A DNA stretch of 64,000 nucleotides, from positions 1-64,000 of the forward strand of contig DF237088.1 of the NCBI GenBank assembly GCA_000708835.1, read 5' to 3'. The position numbers were made by a program, and so were the translations under genes. The stretch is from Klebsormidium nitens. Its lineage: Eukaryota > Plantae > Klebsormidiophyceae. The notes below the pieces were generated by a model. It worked only from the letters and a program-made list of their open reading frames with translations. It had not been told where the DNA came from and did no database searches. Of this stretch, positions 37,591-50,300 are shown piece by piece; position 1 is the stretch's first letter, and the number at the start of each line of letters is the position of its first letter.

Positions 37591-40500
37591 TTAAGACTCC
37601 AACATCTTCAAACCTTTAACGGCGCACCTTTTCATCTGCTCGGCTTTTGCCGTCTCCTCCGCCTCTCGGCCCATCGCAGCAATCGCAGCCGCCCGCGTTC
37701 CCGCTACTGGGCCTCTGCCACGTGGCACCGCTCCCACGGATCCGCCGTACCGGCTCAGGAAGTCGGCTTCTGCCTCGGCCGCCGCTGCGGCTCGGACAGC
37801 CTGCACAGAGTTTTGAATCAAGTGAGAAATGCCCGATTTCAATCGGGAAGATTACCTTTTGACTATTGAGGCTACCAATTTACATGCAAGAACAAGTAAG
37901 AAGAAATAAAGAATGGGGGCAGCCTTAGGCTGGATCAAGTAGCGCAGGCTTTGCCGAAGGCTGCGAGGTACGGCAGAGGGACGGCGAAGCGCTATGACAA
38001 CTGCGCCTCAGAAAAATCGGCGGATGGATGCAGGGAACTGGCGTGCAAAGAAAGGGGCCAACGTTCGACTTAGCTTCCGTCATGATGGATGAAAGAATGC
38101 TCGAAATTGAGACTTTTCGCTACAACGCCGCTGCCAGTGGAGAATGTGGAATCTGGAGGAACCGCTTCCAGCCAGCTTACGTTACAATTTTCGAAGATGG
38201 CCTGGACACAAGAAGTGCACGAGTTACCGAAAAGGCCCACTGACCGGATGCGAGTCCGCCAGCAGCCGGATCTTGAGCGTCGGCATGTGCGACCGCGACC
38301 CGTCCGCTCGTAACTCCACCCACACCGCCTGCATCAGCCCGTACGAATGCACCACGCTCCCGGTCCGCACGTCCGAAACCCGCAAACTGTTTCCCTCTTT
38401 CTGCAGCGCCAAGTGGGCGGTCCCCCAGGCCCCGTTTTCGGCGCCGTCGCTCGGCGGCACCAGCTTGCCGGCCTTGTCGCGCAGGTAAACAGGGCCCCGC
38501 AGGTCGTACTTGGGGACGAAGACCATGAGCCCGTGTGGGTGCACGCTGGTAACGATAGCCTTTTCCGCTGACGTGTGGTTTTGTAAGTATAGTAAAAGGT
38601 ACAGCTCTGAGCAGTCCTTCTGCGAGCGCTTGCTCGCGCGGTGCCGCTCGTTCAAATGGTCCGCGATCTCCTCCAGCTTCGGGGCGCTCGCTAACCCTCT
38701 TCTAACCGGCTCCGCGTTTCGCTCAGGGAAACTAGACGCTGACCCGTTTCTTAACCCACCGTCTTCCAGTGCCGCGATTAATTGCCGATGCACAAGCACG
38801 TCGGCGTACCGTCTGATGGGCGACGTAAAGTGAGTGTAGAACTCCAACGCGAGGCCGTAGTGGTAAAACCCGCTGGAACCCTCCAAACCCCCGCCGTTCG
38901 AGGCCGCCCCCGTGCAGATATACTGCGCCTCTGACATTGCCCGCGTCGCGATCGCGCGCAGCGCGTTCTGGACCGTCAGATCGAGCGCCCGGGTGCGATC
39001 CAACGACTGCGCGAGCGCGCGGTTGCTGCTGACGTCAAGGGGGCCCAGGCCGTACGCTTCGAAGCACTCCTGCAGCCGGTCGAAGCCGTCGGGGCGCGGA
39101 GGGGCGTGGTGACGCAAGAGTGACGTCGACGGGAAGGTGGAGAAGATGCGCTCGGCGACGGCGGAGTTGGCGGCAATCATCAGCTCGGCGACCACCCAGT
39201 TGACTTGGAGCTCCTGCGAAAGAAGTTCCGGAGTTGAGGTGTACAGCATCTAATGACAGATCCACACACGAAAATGCTCGGGGGGAGAAAACGTCTGAGG
39301 CACCGCATATCAGTGAGGATCGATTACGATGTTGTCGGTTTTCTCTCGTAAGGAACAACTAGTAGGGCTGCAAGAGGTTGCAACCTCTTGGGAGCGGATC
39401 AAGCATTGACCAACCGACCGTCTTTGACCATACCCGTAACCAAAGCAGAGCATCGCGCAAGACATCCTTGAAAAGGAGCGCCCAGGCTGACCCTCCGCCT
39501 GCGGTGTCTCCATTCTTCCTCCAAGTCTATTGTCCTCACAAGTTCAACCGGCCAAACACCTCCGGGTCCCTCACTGCATGGCAACAACCTACACAACGCC
39601 TTAAAGTTTTGAAACCCAAAAAGCCCGAAACCCCAAACCCTAGAACCTCTTACCTGCTTGGTGATGACCTTCATCGGCGCCCCGGTCGCGGCATCCGTCT
39701 CGAACCGGAGCTCCGCGCTCGCGAGCTCCAGCGCGCCCGCGGCCTCGCGGCGGCCCCGAAGGGCCCGCGACAGGGCGGCCAGCAGGGAGAGGTCCAGCTG
39801 GAGGAGCCCGCGCTCGGACTCCCCACCGGACACCTCCGGACAGTTCCGACCGTCCAAAATCGCTTGCGCCTGCGCGAAAACAGCAGAAGGCTTTTGAGAA
39901 CGATGCTGCGGTCTTTGGAGGACGGGTTTTGATAGCCCTCGGCCATCCAAGGAAGGGGTCTGAATTGGGTGCTGCTCACTTTCGTGATGCGAGCTGACGA
40001 AGGACTCACACACCAGACAAGATGATTCCTTCAAAGATTTCCTGATCGTAGAACGCAGCGTGGGAGTCTGTAGAGCCTTTGTACGTTTTCAAAACAGGAA
40101 AAAACTGGAGACTGCGAACCAGGATTCGGCGTACTGCATACTCTCTTGCAACCGACTCTCAGTCTGAAACTGCTCAGCAACCTACCTGCGGATAGCTCAG
40201 CTGATGCCGGTTGTGTATAACCGTCCGCCCGAACCAGGGTCGGCCCACGATCGACGGGCCAGATGGGTCCACGTGCCAGACCACGCTGACCGCGAGGCGA
40301 TCCTGGCCGCCCACGAGCGAGCAAAGGTCCTCCGCCAGAAGTTTTGGGAGCATGTCGAAGCGCCGGTCGACCAAATACACCGTCGTGCCACGAGCTCGCG
40401 CCTCGAGGTCCAATAGGCTATTGTGCCGGACGAAGTAGGAGACGTCCGCGATGTGAACGCCCACCTGTGTGGATGATGAGGGATAGAAAAGGATGCGTAA

Positions 40501-43500
40501 GAGCGCGCGTAGCGATGCGTTTGGCTTGAGCGTGCATAGACGTTCCCTCGCGCGGACGCTTGCTCCTTACAGCAGACTTGAATCACTTCACCAACAGATG
40601 CAGAGTGAGTTTGTAAATCGAGGCCGTCAATGAACAAGCTGGTGACAGACGGACGCATTGTTTTTACGTTCAAAAGGTGCTTTTTGTAATCAATAAGAGA
40701 GACGGCATTCATATTCTCCGGTTGATCTTTTGGAAGTCATTCGAAGTCAAACGAAACATCAAGCTTAAGCATGGTAAGTGAGCTCTCAAACTCCGGACCC
40801 ACCTCAGCAGTGCCGTCGGGCAGCCATCTTACGGACAGCACGTCGTCCACGTCCTTGCTGCCCGGGGGGTCGATGCTGCAGGCCCGGTGATCGTGCCGCA
40901 AGTCGCGTCGCGCCGAGATCTCCACCCGGGGAATGCTCCACGGCGTGGGGGGAAGCTCCTGCAGCGCCCTGTACCGGGGGTACATTTTGATTTAGGAGAT
41001 GCATTTTGAACTAACGTCAGCAGTTTTCTGCTGCTAAGGGGCAAAGCGGCAGCGACCAGTTGGTGCTTTTTGTATGTTCGCTGGACATGGACGAAGAACG
41101 GAGTCTTTCACTGAGACAATCAAAAGCGACATGCCAGAGGACGACAATCTACTGACTATTGTCGCCGTAGGCAACCCGCTACGGATGCTCCTTGTAAAAC
41201 ATCGTCCCACGTTCTTCTAAAATACCCCAACCCATCGTAAAGACTTTTCAACCAACCCGCAAGCCAAATCCAACTCGAAAAAGTTATTGAAACATTAAGC
41301 TGCTTTAAGGGGAAAAGCAGCTAAACAAGCCGCTCGAAAGAAGCACCCTGGTACCGATGCTCTTCTAAGCTCCAACTTTCAAATCTGCTCGCATACCCAC
41401 CCGGTGCTGAACGGCGCCACCTCGATGCCGTTCTCCACGAGCAGGCTCTCGCTCTCCGCTCTCAGGTCGCCAATCGGGCCAACCAGGCGTGCCACGTGTC
41501 CATGCGGGAACGCCGTGTCGCGCTCCCAGCCGTCGACCCGCACGACGAACCGCTGGCCGGCCAGGCGCGCCACCTGGCGCGTTCGCAATCTCACAAAGGG
41601 GATCCGACGGTCCATAGGAACGGCGAGAACGGCCTCGGTCCGGCCGCTGTCAGTGGAACCTGCACAAGGAATGAAGGGCAAACGAGATGATTGAAACGTG
41701 CGAATGACGTAGATTCGTGAGAGTGCTTAGCGTGGGAATCAAAAGCGGACGGAGAAGCGTCCAAAACACCTAATGACTTGAATAGACTTTTGCTTCAACG
41801 AGACGATCACTTGGAAGGTTCCAAAGCGGACTTTTCCAGCAGCTGATTCAGGGCTCACTTCAAATTCCTTAATTGATTATTTGTGTCGAGCCGATCATTC
41901 ACTTACTGATACGGCTACAAGAAAAGGGCAGGGCAGATGTAAGGTGAAACATCAGCGGAAGGCCGACCTTCGAACGGCTCTACAAGCAGCCTTGGCTCGA
42001 GACCCTGTGACCCAAACTTCGAAGACAGACTCACCCAAGCTCTTTTCATCGTCCTTCTGCAAACACGCCACGTAGTCCCTCGCCGCCCGCTGCACTATCC
42101 CCACCACCTCTCCAGTGGGCACTCTTTCCCCCTGCTTCTCTTCCCCCTCCGCGTGTGAACTTCCTTCCATTCCCCCTCTTTCTGCAGTTCCAACCCCAAC
42201 TTTCGGCGTCCCGTTTGACTGCCCGCTTCTTTCTCCGGTCACCGTTTGCCGGAGGGAACCTTCGCCAGGTAAGCCTTCCTTAAGTAATTCGTCGTTTGAC
42301 TGGGCCTCGGCAGGGCCTGTCTCCAGCTCTGCTTCGACCTCCTCTTCTTCCGGCCCCAATATCGGGTCTTCCGACGGAACAGCGGCTGCTTCCGCCACGT
42401 GGGAGCCACGTGGTCGACCGACCTTGGGGCTGCGCCACTGCTCGCGAGGGAGAAGTCGTACCTGAACGCGGCGGAAGCTTTCAAGTGTTAATACACTGAT
42501 TACCTGGAGGCTATCGGATTTTTGAAACAGAAAGAGGAGGTCACTAACAAGCCATGAAGTGAAGGCTGCGGTTTCGCTTCTCCGGATTTCCCCTGACGAA
42601 CTCAGCTCGCTTTGCTTCGAAACCCTCACTGAGAGTTTTAAAAGCCGTGCCTTTCGAAGTATTGCCAGGAGTCTCGTCAGAGTTGCACTATGTACCGGGG
42701 ACGCTAGGTAACCGTGCCGAATCAGGGGCCTGATCAAGGAGGAGCAAAGAATAGTAGAAGAGCATCAACAGAAACTTACCGCGACCAGGTCCCCTTGCAA
42801 AGCCCGGTTCTGCAGGCGCCGCCCCGGGATGAAGATCTCGTGACGAGAGGCCTCCCCCTTGTTGCTGCACGAGGGAGACTGGATGAGACTCTTCATAGAG
42901 GAACTGACAACACGTTGGGAGATGGAAGCCAAGTGAGGAGTGCATAGTTCACAAGATTTCGGAACCAGTACGGTTTGAAAGGACGAGCAAGGAGCGGTCC
43001 GAATTCCATTTCGACAGCGGCGTAAATGCCAGCTTCAGCTGTCTCGCTCGAACGCGTCAAGGCACTGCAGCATTGAACAACAAAAAATCGAGCATAACGA
43101 GATCTCAAGATGAAACGTCGAGAAGAACAGGGGAGGTTGACGAGCTTCCAAACGGGGAGGCACAGGGATCGTACCTCGGTCGAACGAATGCTTCGTCCGG
43201 GGCTTGGCGGCTGACTTGGAAGACACCGACACGGATGGTGCCGTCCGAAAGACCGTCCTCGATCGCGTGAGCTGAAAGACGTCAGAGGAACGATGCATGT
43301 GAGTAAGCAAAGGCGGTCTAACAACATCGTTCGCAGATAGCTGCGCTTGTTAGACCTACAAGATAGCATCATGAGCGTTTGTCAAGGGCCAAAGAAGCGA
43401 CAAGCTGCAGGAGAAAGCGCAGGCAATAAACACTGAAGACTAATATGCTTTTTGTCGTCACAAGTAAGTAAAATTCTGGCTACTTTGGAAAAATGCAAAA

Positions 43501-46244
43501 GATCTTGGAAAAGCTCTGACCTGGAAGAAATGGAGGATAGGAAGTTCCCTTCCCGATGGTTGCCCGGGGCTCAGAAGGCAAAGCTTCTGTTGCCTCTGTC
43601 CGAGAATGGTCCTGCAATAGCAAGATCCACAGTATTCACCAAGGTTTCTACTTTTCTGAACGGTGACCTCCCCAATTGTGGCCTTGCGAGCTGTCACAAT
43701 TATGCATGCACGTGAAACGAGAGGCCATTTTGCTAGTTAGGGTCAAAAAATAAAGCTGCGTGGGCTGAAAATCGCGTTCAGGCGGTTTCAGTCTATGCTT
43801 CGGAAACAAGGCCACATTATTGTGCAGGATTGCAACGCAACACGCTGGTGCAAGGTAATTAGATCAGGCCACTCAACTTACGCAAGATAAATTAACGACT
43901 TCTTATCCTCGTCAATGACTTTGCAAAGCAGCGCTGACTTACCAACGCCTCGAAGAGCTCGAGCACCTCGGAGTCGTGCCGCCAGAACCGATGGAAGTAC
44001 TCGGAGCCGCTCAGAACCTGGAAAGAGAAAAGAACGGTTTTTGCGATCAGCTGACACCCAGCAAAAAGGCCGCTCGGCATCAGCTCTGTGACAGGCCATC
44101 CGCCAATCCGTTTCCAGTGGGGTTCATCGAAGCCAACGAACGTCCGAGAAAAGTTGTCGGAGGCGATGCCCGGACGTTTGAGCCTTCGAAGCGTGGCCAA
44201 AGGTGACCGCTGTATTTTTCCAGTGACGTCGAGATCATCGCACGGCTCGGAACTCGCATAAATTGACAGAGTACCTTCCACATCCGTACTGGCAAATCCC
44301 TCAGTTATGATCATTTTCAACAAGAGTTTCTGTACGCGTCGACACATTTTCAGACCTGCAATGAATCTTAGGAGGAGACTGCTGCACCATTCCTTCTCGG
44401 ACCGCAGGCTCACCTGCACGCCTGTCCTCAGCAGCCGCTGCCGGACGCCTTCGGACGCCTCCGTCAGCTGGTCGGACAGCACCACAATCAGCGTCCGCTG
44501 CTGCAAGTGCTCCGCAAACCACGCCGCAGTGGCCTGGATACCAGCGTCTAGCCCGTGCTTCTTCGGAGGGATCCCCCTGTTTTGGCTTCCGTTGATTGGG
44601 TGAGGAGAAATGCTTTTCGAGGGATGGTCGGGTTTGGGGGTGTAGTCCTGGCGCATGAGCCACGTGTAGAGGCAGTGCTGGTCGTCGAAGAAGGAGCTCT
44701 GGCGGCGCCGGTCGGAGTAGAGGGATCTGCGAACAATGAGGTTGTTAGAGGTTTGTTAGAGGTCTGTTAGACGTTTGTTAGACGTTTGTCAGAGGTTTGT
44801 TAGCTTTCGGGAATCCGTTTCAGGCCAGAAGTAACGTGTGGACCTCACAAACAGATTGAATCGATCTACACGTTATATCAAGCTTGCTAAGCGAAGAAGG
44901 GAATCTATGCTCCTAGTTCTAGTGATAGGCTCTGCAAATACGAAATGCTCAACGAAGTTGCTGTGATACGAGTGATTTCCCCTCCTTTACGTCACGTGTT
45001 CTTCCCGAGGATTCCTTGAGCAGCTCCCAGAAGCGTGAAAAAATCATACAGTTTCGCAAACCTCATTTGCCTAGCGGCAATCAGTTGACAAGGAGAGACT
45101 CACTTCAAACGAGGGGTCTTCCGCTGATTCACCTTCTGAAGCACCTGGGAGAAAGGGAGAAAATCTCAGCTCAAAGATGGCACGACGAGCTTGTGAGTGC
45201 ATTCCCTACGATCATGGCGATAATTGACAAGAAACGTGCATGTCTTTGGCAGCTTCTGTAACATCTTTCTTATAAAGATCATGAAGAAACTCGAGCTGTG
45301 CACCCAACCAAAGGCCCCATGTCCACGAAGGTAGACCAGGGTACAGGAATTGAATTGATGGACTGGTAAAGTACTTACTTCTTTGATCACGGAGGCCAGG
45401 TAGATGACCCCAGTGAGCTGGGGTAGCTCGAGAATCTCCTGGTAGTCAAGGACGGCTTGGGCGTCTGGTATCTGGAAGCATCAAAGCAAAATGCTACTGA
45501 CTTTGAAGCTTGAATCTAGGTCGAAACCTTCATTATGCCATCATTTGAGGACTTTAAGTGATGGTCTCAGAATCATAAGTACTGCCCTGAGATACTCTCC
45601 TAGGAGTACTAGTTGATCATCTGTTTCACTCAATGAAACAGACAATTTCGATATATTCCACTGGGCAAGCTCACCAAGTAGTGAGACGCCTGTCTCGACA
45701 AGGGGGGGCTCTCTTGCTGGCAGCCGCTAGGGCAATCTTGCGCCCCACAAGGGATGTCATCCCGGAGGTAGTGTTCCTCGCTTAGAAGTGAGACAGCCTG
45801 GGTGCGCTTCCTGAACTTTGTTGCCACCCTGACCTGCATCAATCAGGCAGGAAGATGTCCATGGAACGCAGACGTTGATTAGCTGATCCTTCAAGTCTGC
45901 CCTGAGAAGCAGCTGAGAAGTGGCTGCTTGCCACCGACTGTTGGACCTTGAAAAGGTTCTGAGGACCATCAGGCGAAGAAGAGATTATCGAGAACAAGCA
46001 GCAAAGACTTTGCTCCCTCTTACTACTCAAAGTAGGCCACTTAAAGTATGCCAATGAATCTTTTCTTACCCTCCCATTTGAAAATTCTGACCAGAAATCA
46101 ACACACGATCCAATCACTGATTCAAGCCAGCCACCAGTGCAGTTCAATGAAGCGCTGCTTGCAATGCTGTCAACTCTGCATTCGATGACTGAGGTGGTGG
46201 AGGAGCTCAGGATCCACCTGCCGCGCCACCCATTTGCTTTCCAT
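37591..46244 (-). CDS. DIS3L: DIS3-like 3'-5' exoribonuclease (CR3-PIN-CSD-RNB-S1), DIS3L type, about 1180 aa
   Basis: Exons 46244-46218, 45833-45675, 45471-45379, 45144-45104, 44726-44414, 44017-43943, 43611-43521, 43271-43175, 42903-42780, 42461-42035, 41659-41401, 40968-40803, 40464-40186, 39869-39654, 39213-38245, 37800-37591, phases consistent. Motifs EHYLRDDIPCG, IPDAQAVLDYQEILE, SIDPPGSKDVDDVLSVR, GVHIADV, ELMIAAN, HYGLALEFYTHFTSPIRRYAD. First exon and the extreme 3' end are less certain (alternative donor at 37627). Confidence 0.93.
44739..44803. repeat. 11-bp tandem repeat, about 6 copies, in a DIS3L intron
   Basis: Units of gaggtttgtta / gacgtttgtta / gaggtctgtta immediately 5' of the acceptor of the 44726 exon. 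Confidence 0.85.
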
Positions 46245-47323: not shown

Positions 47324-50300
47324 ATGGCGTCGTCTTCTATTGCTGCATTGCCCTCTGCAACTCTAGTTCCTTGCTCAAGGTGGTCGACCCAACAACTGAA
47401 GACAGCTCCCCATGGACTGCCAGAGCTGCTGAAACCGTGTCACTGTGTGCGGCGTCCTCGCTGCATGCCAACAGCACCCAAGGTACTCGCACATCCTTTC
47501 TATTGGTCCAATTGGTTGTGGTTACGCCCTCTTTTTCAAGAATCCTTGGATAGAGAAGCTCTGTGACGCCTTTCTGCAGCTCTCCCTTCAGAAGAACTCA
47601 TTTGTTGGTGATTATGAGCTAGTGCCTTCATAACATGAATGACCACTTTGACATGAATGCCATGTGTTTTATGAACCAATGTCTCTTGGGCCGGCTGGTT
47701 TGAGTTCCTGAGCCGTCTTCAAGTTAGCCTATTGGGTCAACTCATTAGAGCCTAGTCCTACACTCCTCAGTTCGATCACATAGCGCATCTCCCCAAAGAA
47801 CGCCAACCAGTTGTTCCATTCGTTCGCTAGTCCGCGTTGGCTCGATGTTTCCTCATGTCGTTCATCAGTTACGATTGCATTGGTGCGCAGGCTTCTTATG
47901 AGGAGCCTCCTCTGGGGCGAAGGGATGCTCTTTTTGTGGGGGTTGCCGGAGCTGCGCTGAGCGCCCTGGTGGGGGCTGCAGTGATGTTGCAACCGGTGGA
48001 TGTGGCGCAAGCATACCTGGTGAGAAGGCCAGCTGTGGAGCGTGCCACCACAATCATAGACAAGATAGGATATGCTCCTGTCCGATGGAAAGAAAATAAT
48101 TTCAGCATTTCCTTATCTGGACATGATCACACCGCTTTGGGATGTCCCATAAGTCTAGTGACGAGGCTGGCCGAGATTTTATCAATTCTAGACAGTGTGT
48201 CATGTCGCAATTGGGGAGCGCGCAAATACGATCGACTTTTCTTCAGTTATAGAGCCTCGTGCGGTCTTTTTGAGGTGTGGGGGTAGGTTGTGAAACGCAC
48301 CTTGCTGAACAGAGTTTCTCAAGTGATATGAAGCTAGGATGTTGTCCAATCCGCCGTCTCCCCTGGCATCATACAAAATGACAATATGCAAACACAAGTT
48401 ATTGTTGAGTCAGGACTAGATTTTCAACAATAAGTGTTCCGCTTCAGCTTTGGCTTGCACAAAAAGAAGCTGTCACTGTCATCCATGAACAAGCTACAAG
48501 GGAATCCTTGAAAGGGTGGTACTCAGCAAGGCGGTGAAGGTCTTTGTGACTTGCTGAACCATTTCTAAACACCCTCAACCTCTTTACAACAAACTGAAGT
48601 GAGGCTATATGTAAATGAGGTCCAACAAACTGAAGTGAGGTCACAGACTAAAAGTGGGGTTCTTTGATCTTGTCCGACAGGGTGGCGGCCCCTATGGCCG
48701 GCAAGTAACGCGGGGCCAGGACCTGAGTGGACAGGACTTCAGCAACCTGGACCTGACGGGCCAAGACTTCAAAACAGTGAGCCAAAACAAACGCCCCTCA
48801 TCTGAAAACGCCCTCTCAAAACCCAATTAACAAAGCAGATGAGGAAAATTTGCATAGACTCAGGCTGCAAGCCCAGGCGTCTCTGTTGCATCTTCAAAGC
48901 CGTTAAACTTCTTGCCTGGCAATGGATGCTGGCAGAATTCTGCCAACGCTGCTGGTGGGACCGAAAGGCTGGAAAGTTCGTTTCAAGCAACGGCACAGAC
49001 AGGCTTGAGAGAAAGTTCTGGTCTTCCACAGTTGGCCATCGCACCAAAGAACTCAAATGCAGGGAATTCAACAGTGCACGTCAGCAGGGGCTAACGATTG
49101 CTCAGCAATACTGCATAGTGACCAGTCCGCATGTCCCATTTGGCTCTGGCTGCAGTCCATCCTCCGGCAGACTACCTTCAAGAACTCAAAGCTAGCAGGG
49201 GCGAGTTTTTTTGACGCTGACCTGGCAGGTGGGCCTCATTCACATCAAAGTCGCCTCGCCGATTTTGGGGACCACACCACTCTGTTGCCTTCTCTTGGCT
49301 TGTTGCATTGTTGAAGAAAACTTGTTGATCCGAGCGTTGCCTGATGCATGCACTCCCTGGACCGCACTTGATCTGCACGGGTACTTTTGACCAAAGCATG
49401 ATCTGCTGACATCGTCAGGAGTAGGGTCCCTCTTGTCTCAATCTATAACCGTGGTCTTCTTACAGGGGCTGACTTCTCGAACACTGACCTTCGTGGGGCG
49501 GACTTTTCGCTCTGCAGAGCGACCCAGGTAGGCTGAGCCCTTTTCAACATGGCACTTCGCAGGACTATAAGACACTACTTCTTGAGCCTTTCGTGGTGCG
49601 CAGTCCTTGATTAGAATGCTATGAGATTGTGAGCGCAGGATAACATGAACGCACTCTATTGCAACCATTTCACGGCCCAAGTTCTGTAATTGGCAATACA
49701 GAACCTGGATGAAGTCCCAGGTTTATCAGATTGCTCTACAGACTGTAGGAATGGAACCGCTTCTTTTGGCTTCTGCCAGAATGCAGAATCAGGTTCGTTT
49801 TCAAGACTGCGGTCGATAATTCCAGACCAGAGAGTTCTCCATATATGAACGTGTCGCTAAGTTCGTACTCTCTTGAAGCGCTTTTGGGGCCGAGCAGGTG
49901 AATCTTGCTTGGTAGATTACAGACTACGGAAAGTCAGAGGCGCGTCCAGTCCTAGCAACCCTTCATAAGCGTCTGCTCGCATCCTTTTCAATTCAGTTTT
50001 CCTTGGATCCCACTTGGCAGGTCAATTTCACTGGTGCCATCTTTGAGGGCGCAACTGTGACTGGCAACACCCAATTCAAAGGCTCCAATGTAACGGATAC
50101 AGGTAAACATTCCAGCCTCTCTCGCTCAGACGAGCAAGAGCGGCAGCGTTCTGAGAATCATGTCCATTCTATCACGAGAATCGGATGCGAGATCGGGAAA
50201 GGTTGCACTTTGAATGACTTCTCGTTACTAAGTGCAAGTCTTATCTGACGCTTCTATTCCATTTTTGCGGCCACGATTGATAGCACTTGTTTGTCTGATC

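Follow-up and report, generated by a model that had tools for sequence, protein, structure and literature searches.

A probable DIS3-like exonuclease 1 (DIS3L1) gene in the streptophyte alga Klebsormidium nitens

Introduction

DIS3/RRP44 (human DIS3, yeast Rrp44, Arabidopsis RRP44A) has two paralogues in the RNase II family, DIS3-like exonuclease 1 (DIS3L/DIS3L1) and DIS3L2 (SOV or RRP44B in Arabidopsis). Human DIS3L is the catalytic subunit of the cytoplasmic exosome and has been structurally resolved (PDB 9g8m-9g8p); DIS3L2/SOV is exosome-independent. The RNA-decay literature states that DIS3L1 is confined to animals (PMC8097288). No experimental studies of plant or algal DIS3L1-type proteins were found in the searchable literature.

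Here, we describe a locus in a window of 64,000 nucleotides from Klebsormidium nitens (contig DF237088.1, positions 1 to 64,000). The initial annotation of positions 37591-46244, which comprise a coding part (45839-38224) and flanks on both sides, had suggested a DIS3L gene. We conclude with high confidence that the locus is one intact 14-exon minus-strand gene orthologous to DIS3L1. Since DIS3L is called animal-specific in the searchable literature, the K. nitens gene represents a known family with a distribution wider than published. The finding is not categorically new, as automatically assigned database names already read DIS3-like exonuclease 1. Sequence comparisons indicate that the animal-only picture stems from the sampling of Arabidopsis, yeast, and opisthokonts.

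Results and Discussion

Gene structure and conservation

The homology-guided gene model is given in Table 1. All four peptides quoted in the initial annotation were located on the minus strand, in separate exons of this one gene: IPDAQAVLDYQEILE (45427-45471); YFHRFWRHDSEVLELFEAL (43943-43999); SIDPPGSKDVDDVLSVR (40827-40877); and DRRFDMLPKLLAEDLCSLVGGQDR (40297-40368).

Table 1. Predicted exons of the DIS3L1-type gene in the K. nitens window.
Feature	Position	Strand	Description
DIS3L1-type gene, coding span	38224..45839	-	14 exons, ~1098 aa; introns all GT-AG
Exon 1	45675..45839	-	First in-frame ATG and CR3-type cysteine motif (C31, C37, C41; ~45749-45720); aligns to DIS3 and DIS3L1 N-termini; DNA identity 79.5% to L001 241-406
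Exon 2	45379..45471	-	PIN-like region begins; acidic D58, E86; backed by alignment and L001 conservation
Exon 3	45104..45144	-	41-nt micro-exon VLQKVNQRKTPRL
Exon 4	44414..44726	-	PIN-like core: D160, H173, SDQ motif (D185/Q186)
Exon 5	43943..44017	-	Carries the YFHRFWRHD peptide of the initial annotation; L001-conserved
Exon 6	43521..43611	-	Linker; YPPFLP at end, counterpart of the YKEHL motif in plant DIS3L1 proteins; L001-conserved
Exon 7	43175..43271	-	Cold-shock domain 1 begins; L001-conserved
Exon 8	42780..42864	-	SNKGEAS...GDLVA; donor GTAAGT; L001-conserved
Exon 9	42035..42461	-	VRLLPREQW, acidic linker, VPTGEVVGIVQR; L001 blocks 42466-42307 and 42133-42030
Exon 10	41401..41659	-	Cold-shock domain 2; Pfam OB_Dis3 E = 1.6e-19; DNA identity 85.7% to L001
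Exon 11	40803..40968	-	RNB begins; four-aspartate active site DPPGSKDVDD (~40871-40842)
Exon 12	40186..40464	-	RNB; Pfam RNB E = 4e-32
Exon 13	39654..39869	-	RNB; Pfam, homologue alignment, and L001 conservation
Exon 14	38224..39213	-	RNB end (to ~38764), S1, C-terminal part, stop codon; Pfam RNB match

The gene was compared with L001, a contig of metagenomic origin that represents a close relative. Nucleotide conservation between the two is confined to blocks coinciding with the predicted exons. This pattern led to revision of a first model at exons 4 and 9 and at 44299-44228. Namely, an extra exon at 44299-44228 was dropped because the relative shows no conservation there, while conservation at 44447-44409 and 42466-42307 led us to lengthen exon 4 and to move the exon 9 acceptor to an earlier position. 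The donor of exon 4 was placed at 44414 because conservation extends to 44409. The micro-exon, located by scoring all AG..GT micro-exons against homologues, is also present in the relative with AG/GT flanks (L001 1079-1119). A candidate upstream start exon (46303-46218) with a GW motif as in plant N-termini was left out as unconserved in the relative, and a conserved block at 48031-47888 was assigned to a neighbouring gene on the plus strand.

The DIS3L1-type gene of K. nitens is under purifying selection, with a dN/dS of ~0.15 at a dS of 0.95 in comparison with the relative. A decaying or untranscribed gene copy is a very unlikely explanation of the locus. All 14 exons can be read through in an open frame, the splice sites are canonical, the catalytic residues of RNB are all intact, and the low dN/dS was obtained in a comparison in which intron similarity is no longer detectable. 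What could be taken as a sign of decay is the start codon: the predicted ATG at 45839 corresponds to a Leu codon in the relative, and the true start of the gene is uncertain for this reason.

Domain organization of the encoded protein

The encoded protein displays the DIS3L1 layout, which includes the CR3 cysteine motif, a degenerate PIN-like region, CSD1, CSD2, RNB, and the S1/C-terminal part. Pfam RNB extends across four consecutive exons (profile positions 1-325), and OB_Dis3 (CSD2) was detected in a fifth one. The features of the RNB/RNase II family are present, including DPPGSKDVDD at residues 582-591, all four catalytic aspartates, and the Arg motif HFTSPIRRY at 897.

Over its first 230 residues, the protein can be aligned to the N-termini of both DIS3 and DIS3L1. 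Residues C31, C37, C41, and H173 are kept, and the CR3 spacing is C-x5-C-x3-C. The presence of CR3 and a PIN-like N-terminus excludes DIS3L2, in line with the reasoning of the initial annotation.

According to the alignment, the K. nitens protein keeps D58, E86, and D160 of the acidic PIN tetrad, as does the relative. In K. nitens, the position of the fourth Asp is occupied by Gln186, with Asp185 adjoining. Each of the aligned animal and land-plant DIS3L1 sequences is devoid of at least one of the positions D58, E86, and D160. Pfam PIN_4 matches every DIS3 among the matches listed. No PIN_4 match was obtained for the window's exons or for the two DIS3L1 N-termini scanned (fish and Marchantia), and precomputed domain annotations of the DIS3L1-type proteins matched by liverwort and Ginkgo queries do not include it. 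Gln186 at the fourth catalytic position fits a dead PIN, and the alignment suggests that the PIN-like part of the algal protein is probably not an endonuclease.

Putative function

By orthology, the algal DIS3L1 would be a processive, hydrolytic 3'-5' exoribonuclease. Its CR3/PIN-like N-terminus would dock onto the nine-subunit exosome core as in human DIS3L, and the enzyme would serve cytoplasmic RNA decay as it does in humans, with the nuclear work left to a separate, presumed DIS3/RRP44. Exosome binding, cytoplasmic localisation, and activity are what we infer for the alga by analogy with human DIS3L.

A true member of the DIS3L1 clade may also perform a job unlike that of human DIS3L, acting independently of the exosome, within the nucleus, or additionally as an endonuclease via its fuller PIN site. 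This possibility is worth considering but is clearly the less likely one. It draws on the three PIN acidic residues shared by the alga and its relative and incompletely preserved in the aligned animal and land-plant proteins. Replacement of the fourth catalytic Asp by Gln speaks against endonuclease activity, and retention of CR3 and the His, both of which matter in yeast for binding to the exosome core (PMC3467083), speaks against an exosome-free role.

Sequence similarity and phylogeny

Comparison with solved structures, reported for exons 12 and 14, gave the highest scores with human DIS3L. For exon 14, these scores were: 171 bits (human DIS3L, PDB 9g8n/9g8m); 113-118 bits (DIS3); and 83-102 bits (DIS3L2). 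The exon aligned to residues 674-976 of human DIS3L, with the alignment reaching almost to the end. For the RNB exon (exon 12, queried as 40174-40464), human DIS3L was the best solved-structure match with 102 bits vs 72-81 bits for DIS3. In BLASTP of the whole model against the paralogues, DIS3L2 scored lowest. The nearest full-length relatives were plant and algal proteins of the DIS3L1 type. Identity to those of Marchantia and Ginkgo was 46-48% over the whole length; that to plant RRP44A was ~40% over the C-terminal two thirds.

By sequence phylogeny, the algal protein belongs to a pan-eukaryotic DIS3L1-type clade that is separate from DIS3. The FastTree reconstruction (158 rows) supported the DIS3 clade at 100 and the DIS3L1-type clade at 97. 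The corresponding values in the IQ-TREE analysis under LG+C20 PMSF (69 rows) were 99 and 97, and here the window's protein was placed within a streptophyte group with a support of 99. DIS3L2 was represented in the trees by a single long-branched sequence. Besides plant and animal sequences, the DIS3L1-type clade includes those from Amoebozoa, an oomycete, Thecamonas, and a glaucophyte, which agrees with the earlier view of this gene as ancient.

Approximately unbiased (AU) tests were made with IQ-TREE under LG+F+G4, using fast searches and 36 rows. The hypothesis of a single clade uniting all plant sequences was rejected (p = 6e-85; p = 4e-65 under the refined model), as was that of a single clade of all animal sequences (p = 7e-84). 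The tests thereby reject a plant-only or an animal-only duplication.

We also considered whether the gene could be the alga's own DIS3/RRP44, evolving fast and drawn towards DIS3L1 by long-branch attraction. No Klebsormidium entry was found among the best 120 of 1852 matches to a lycophyte RRP44 query, and monophyly of the whole DIS3L1-type group was only moderately supported under the simpler model (SH-aLRT 68-84 in the fast LG+F+G4 searches). The same searches exclude the algal protein from DIS3 at >=99.7, however, and in every tree it falls outside the DIS3 clade with a support of 99-100. Forcing the DIS3 and DIS3L1-type sequences of plants together costs ~350 log-likelihood units. Plant DIS3 is itself highly conserved, being 72-77% identical between a lycophyte and angiosperms, whereas the algal protein is only ~40% identical to it. 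Finally, both types coexist in the liverwort Calypogeia fissa (P0153 and P0265), and also in the genus Marchantia. An origin of this gene as the alga's DIS3 is thus very improbable: it lies outside the DIS3 clade, has no PIN_4 match, and misses the fourth PIN Asp. The initial annotation had proposed a tree of the three paralogues as a check on its assignment of the gene to DIS3L, and not to DIS3 or DIS3L2. This assignment is supported by the structure scores, the nearest relatives, the three trees, and the AU tests.

Distribution and evolutionary implications

DIS3L1-type genes were found in chlorophytes, other streptophyte algae, liverworts, Selaginella, and gymnosperms. Those from Marchantia polymorpha, Riccia, Selaginella moellendorffii, Chlorella ohadii, and Pleodorina starrii carry the automatic name 'DIS3-like exonuclease 1'; the orthologues from Ginkgo, Cryptomeria, Taxus, Welwitschia, Mesotaenium, and Mesostigma are unnamed. 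No flowering-plant or moss DIS3L1 occurred among the matches to the liverwort and Ginkgo protein queries. RRP44A-type entries, by contrast, number >1800. The loss in flowering plants suggested by the initial annotation is supported by this absence. Since the gene is widely kept, including in gymnosperms, the loss appears to be late. The distribution thus supports the earlier suggestion and refines it, placing the loss at or near the flowering-plant stem rather than at the origin of land plants.

We moderately favour a scenario in which the duplication that gave rise to DIS3 and DIS3L1 is older than the plant-animal split and perhaps older than the last eukaryotic common ancestor. In that case, possession of a dedicated second exosome nuclease would be the ancestral state, with independent losses in fungi, in flowering plants, and perhaps in mosses. 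A two-nuclease exosome system of the human kind would operate in non-flowering plants and green algae, and the near-complete PIN site of the alga hints at endonuclease activity of the ancestral DIS3L1. This raises the question of the source of the cytoplasmic exosome's hydrolytic activity, which is testable in non-flowering models such as Marchantia. A further question is what changed when angiosperms lost DIS3L1.

Comparison with known systems

The plant and algal DIS3L1-type proteins are direct orthologues of the K. nitens protein, with identities of 46-54% that extend across the entire protein in the cases of Marchantia and Ginkgo. The Pfam pattern of OB_Dis3 and RNB without PIN_4 is common to them and the K. 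nitens protein, as is the well-supported streptophyte clade. The land-plant members have lost more of the PIN acidic residues than the alga.

Human DIS3L possesses the same domain order and an intact RNB active site, and falls into the same clade. The PIN-like region of animal DIS3L1 likewise escapes Pfam PIN_4, as seen in the fish N-terminus. The fish orthologue is only ~40% identical to the algal protein, over the C-terminal two thirds. It has lost the residues at the E86 and D160 positions that the alga keeps, but retains the fourth Asp where the alga has Gln.

The paralogue DIS3/RRP44 resembles the algal protein in its overall architecture, CR3 motif, and RNB chemistry. It differs by its separate clade, an active PIN tetrad, and the PIN_4 match, and the algal protein scores lower against it. 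DIS3L2 and Arabidopsis SOV share the RNB and cold-shock core with the algal protein but are devoid of the CR3/PIN N-terminus, and DIS3L2 gave the lowest score of the three paralogues for exon 14.

Gene model and its conservation

Full-length relatives were placed on the region by tblastn, and all in-frame GT/GC...AG combinations of splice sites were scored against seven or eight homologues. This scoring revealed a 41-nt micro-exon, whose inclusion brings back conserved sequence in the PIN-like region. The final minus-strand model comprises 14 exons, with every splice site canonical, and encodes 1098 residues. The four peptides quoted in the initial annotation were all found, each in its own open segment. 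In Pfam, the RNB domain is split in order across four exons; the exon preceding these carries cold-shock domain 2 of the Dis3 type.

The model was checked independently against a metagenome contig of a close relative (JGI 3300060284, loci L001 and L002). Nucleotide similarity was present only in blocks matching the predicted exons to within a few bases; the introns were unalignable. The micro-exon is kept in the relative, including its AG and GT flanks, and three exon boundaries were corrected from this comparison. A candidate upstream exon, not conserved in the relative, was left out. The model's putative start ATG corresponds to a Leu codon in the relative, where no in-frame ATG occurs upstream. 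Across 1071 aligned codons, amino-acid identity is 80% and dN/dS is 0.15 at a dS of 0.95; the gene is intact and, by these values, maintained by selection. Because the end of exon 13 matches two places on L001, a partial duplication of this exon within an intron is suggested for the relative's species.

Conserved blocks were also seen on both sides of the gene. The one directly downstream of the stop codon, where the range given in the initial annotation begins (37591), could be a conserved 3' UTR or a piece of another gene. About 2 kb upstream, in divergent orientation, a plus-strand exon encodes a twin-arginine-like signal, GRRDALFVGVAGAALSALVGA, and, judging by this signal, may be part of a thylakoid-lumen protein gene.

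Features of the DIS3L1-type gene and its surroundings
Feature	Window	Strand	Relative	DNA identity
Neighbour exon	47837-48286	+
Conserved block in neighbour exon	47888-48031		L002 831-974	82%
Coding sequence (from putative start ATG)	45839-38224	-
Peptide 1	45427-45471	-
Micro-exon	45144-45104	-
Peptide 2	43943-43999	-
Peptide 3	40827-40877	-
RNB exon compared with structures	40174-40464	-
Peptide 4	40297-40368	-
End of exon 13	39734-39648	-	L001 8809-8896 and 8365-8595
Last exon (14)	38224-39213	-
Downstream block	37627-37803		L001 11335-11523	70%

Paralogue assignment

Compared with solved structures, the last exon scored 171 bits with human DIS3L, 113–118 with DIS3 and 83–102 with DIS3L2, and only the DIS3L alignment reached nearly to the exon end. 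The RNB exon gave 102 bits with DIS3L versus 72–81 with DIS3. These scores and the trees bear out the original proposal that the protein fits DIS3L better than DIS3. In local BLASTP of the whole model (single HSPs), the DIS3L1 proteins of Marchantia and Ginkgo aligned end to end with 46–48% identity (930–966 bits), and plant RRP44A aligned over the C-terminal part with about 40% identity (410–419 bits). Searched exhaustively, the last exon matched 237 representative proteins (E <= 1e-30). The closest full-length relatives were from land plants (Riccia, Marchantia, Calypogeia, Selaginella, Ginkgo, Cryptomeria, Taxus, and Welwitschia) as well as Mesotaenium, Mesostigma, Chlorella ohadii, Pleodorina, a pedinophyte, and Cyanophora; several carry the NCBI or UniProt name 'DIS3-like exonuclease 1'.

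The DIS3 and DIS3L1-type clades received support of 100 and 97, respectively, in FastTree (158 rows), and 99 and 97 in IQ-TREE (LG+C20 PMSF, 69 rows). In the latter tree, the Viridiplantae DIS3L1 group and the streptophyte group holding the window's protein were each supported by 99. The DIS3L1-type clade also includes Amoebozoa (Pelomyxa, Balamuthia, Protostelium, and Cavenderia), the oomycete Achlya, and Thecamonas. Plants, Amoebozoa, and animals occur once in each clade, the pattern expected from an old duplication, in agreement with the ancient origin initially proposed. AU tests (36 rows, LG+F+G4, trees from fast searches) rejected a single clade of all plant sequences (deltaL 350, p = 6e-85; refined model, p = 4e-65) and one of all animal sequences (deltaL 326, p = 7e-84). 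In the fast LG+F+G4 searches, SH-aLRT was only 68–84 for the whole DIS3L1-type clade and at least 99.7 for DIS3. A single long-branched sequence represented DIS3L2.

Predicted function

The RNB site DPPGSKDVDD (582–591) and the HFTSPIRRY motif are both intact; this DIS3L1-clade gene has a complete exonuclease site. Its CR3 cysteines C31, C37, and C41 are kept, together with their partner histidine, H173; in yeast, such residues matter for binding to the exosome core (PMC3467083). By alignment, the PIN acidic residues D58, E86, and D160 are retained, and the fourth position is Gln186, adjoined by Asp185; the relative has the same residues. Pfam PIN_4 had no match in the alga's N-terminal exons or in fish or Marchantia DIS3L1, and was found on every DIS3 among the matches listed. 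The protein would be a processive 3'-5' hydrolytic exonuclease, docked onto the exosome core by its CR3/PIN-like end and probably acting in the cytoplasm alongside a putative nuclear DIS3.

Distribution and comparison with known exosome nucleases

In a non-exhaustive word-index search, liverwort and Ginkgo queries matched DIS3L1-type proteins of liverworts, Selaginella, gymnosperms, and a few unnamed assemblies, followed by animal DIS3L1 and then DIS3, with none from flowering plants or mosses. The same database holds >1800 RRP44A-type entries, and the best 120 of 1852 matches include very many angiosperms. Since a seed-plant DIS3L1 should have more words in common with Ginkgo than proteins from liverworts have, the angiosperm absence is read as real loss, as the initial annotation had supposed. 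Physcomitrium and Ceratodon appear among the RRP44A matches and are absent from the DIS3L1-type ones; liverworts are in both. Loss in mosses is possible, with less certainty than in angiosperms, and may be a second, independent event.

DIS3L has been described as an animal paralogue (Lange and Gagliardi; PMC8894942), and Dis3L1 as occurring only in metazoa, based on a tree and PANTHER (Ballou et al.; PMC8097288). In literature searches covering DIS3L in Selaginella, Chlamydomonas, and Dictyostelium and exosome paralogues in LECA, we found no paper on non-animal DIS3L1. The cytoplasmic exosome cofactor RIPR is reported as limited to flowering plants (PMC6711988), the same group that apparently has no DIS3L1; the overlap could be fortuitous or reflect compensation. 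Ballou et al. also set aside an unnamed 'amoebozoan RNII-like' branch (PMC8097288), which may correspond to the DIS3L1-type proteins of Pelomyxa, Balamuthia, Protostelium, and Cavenderia.
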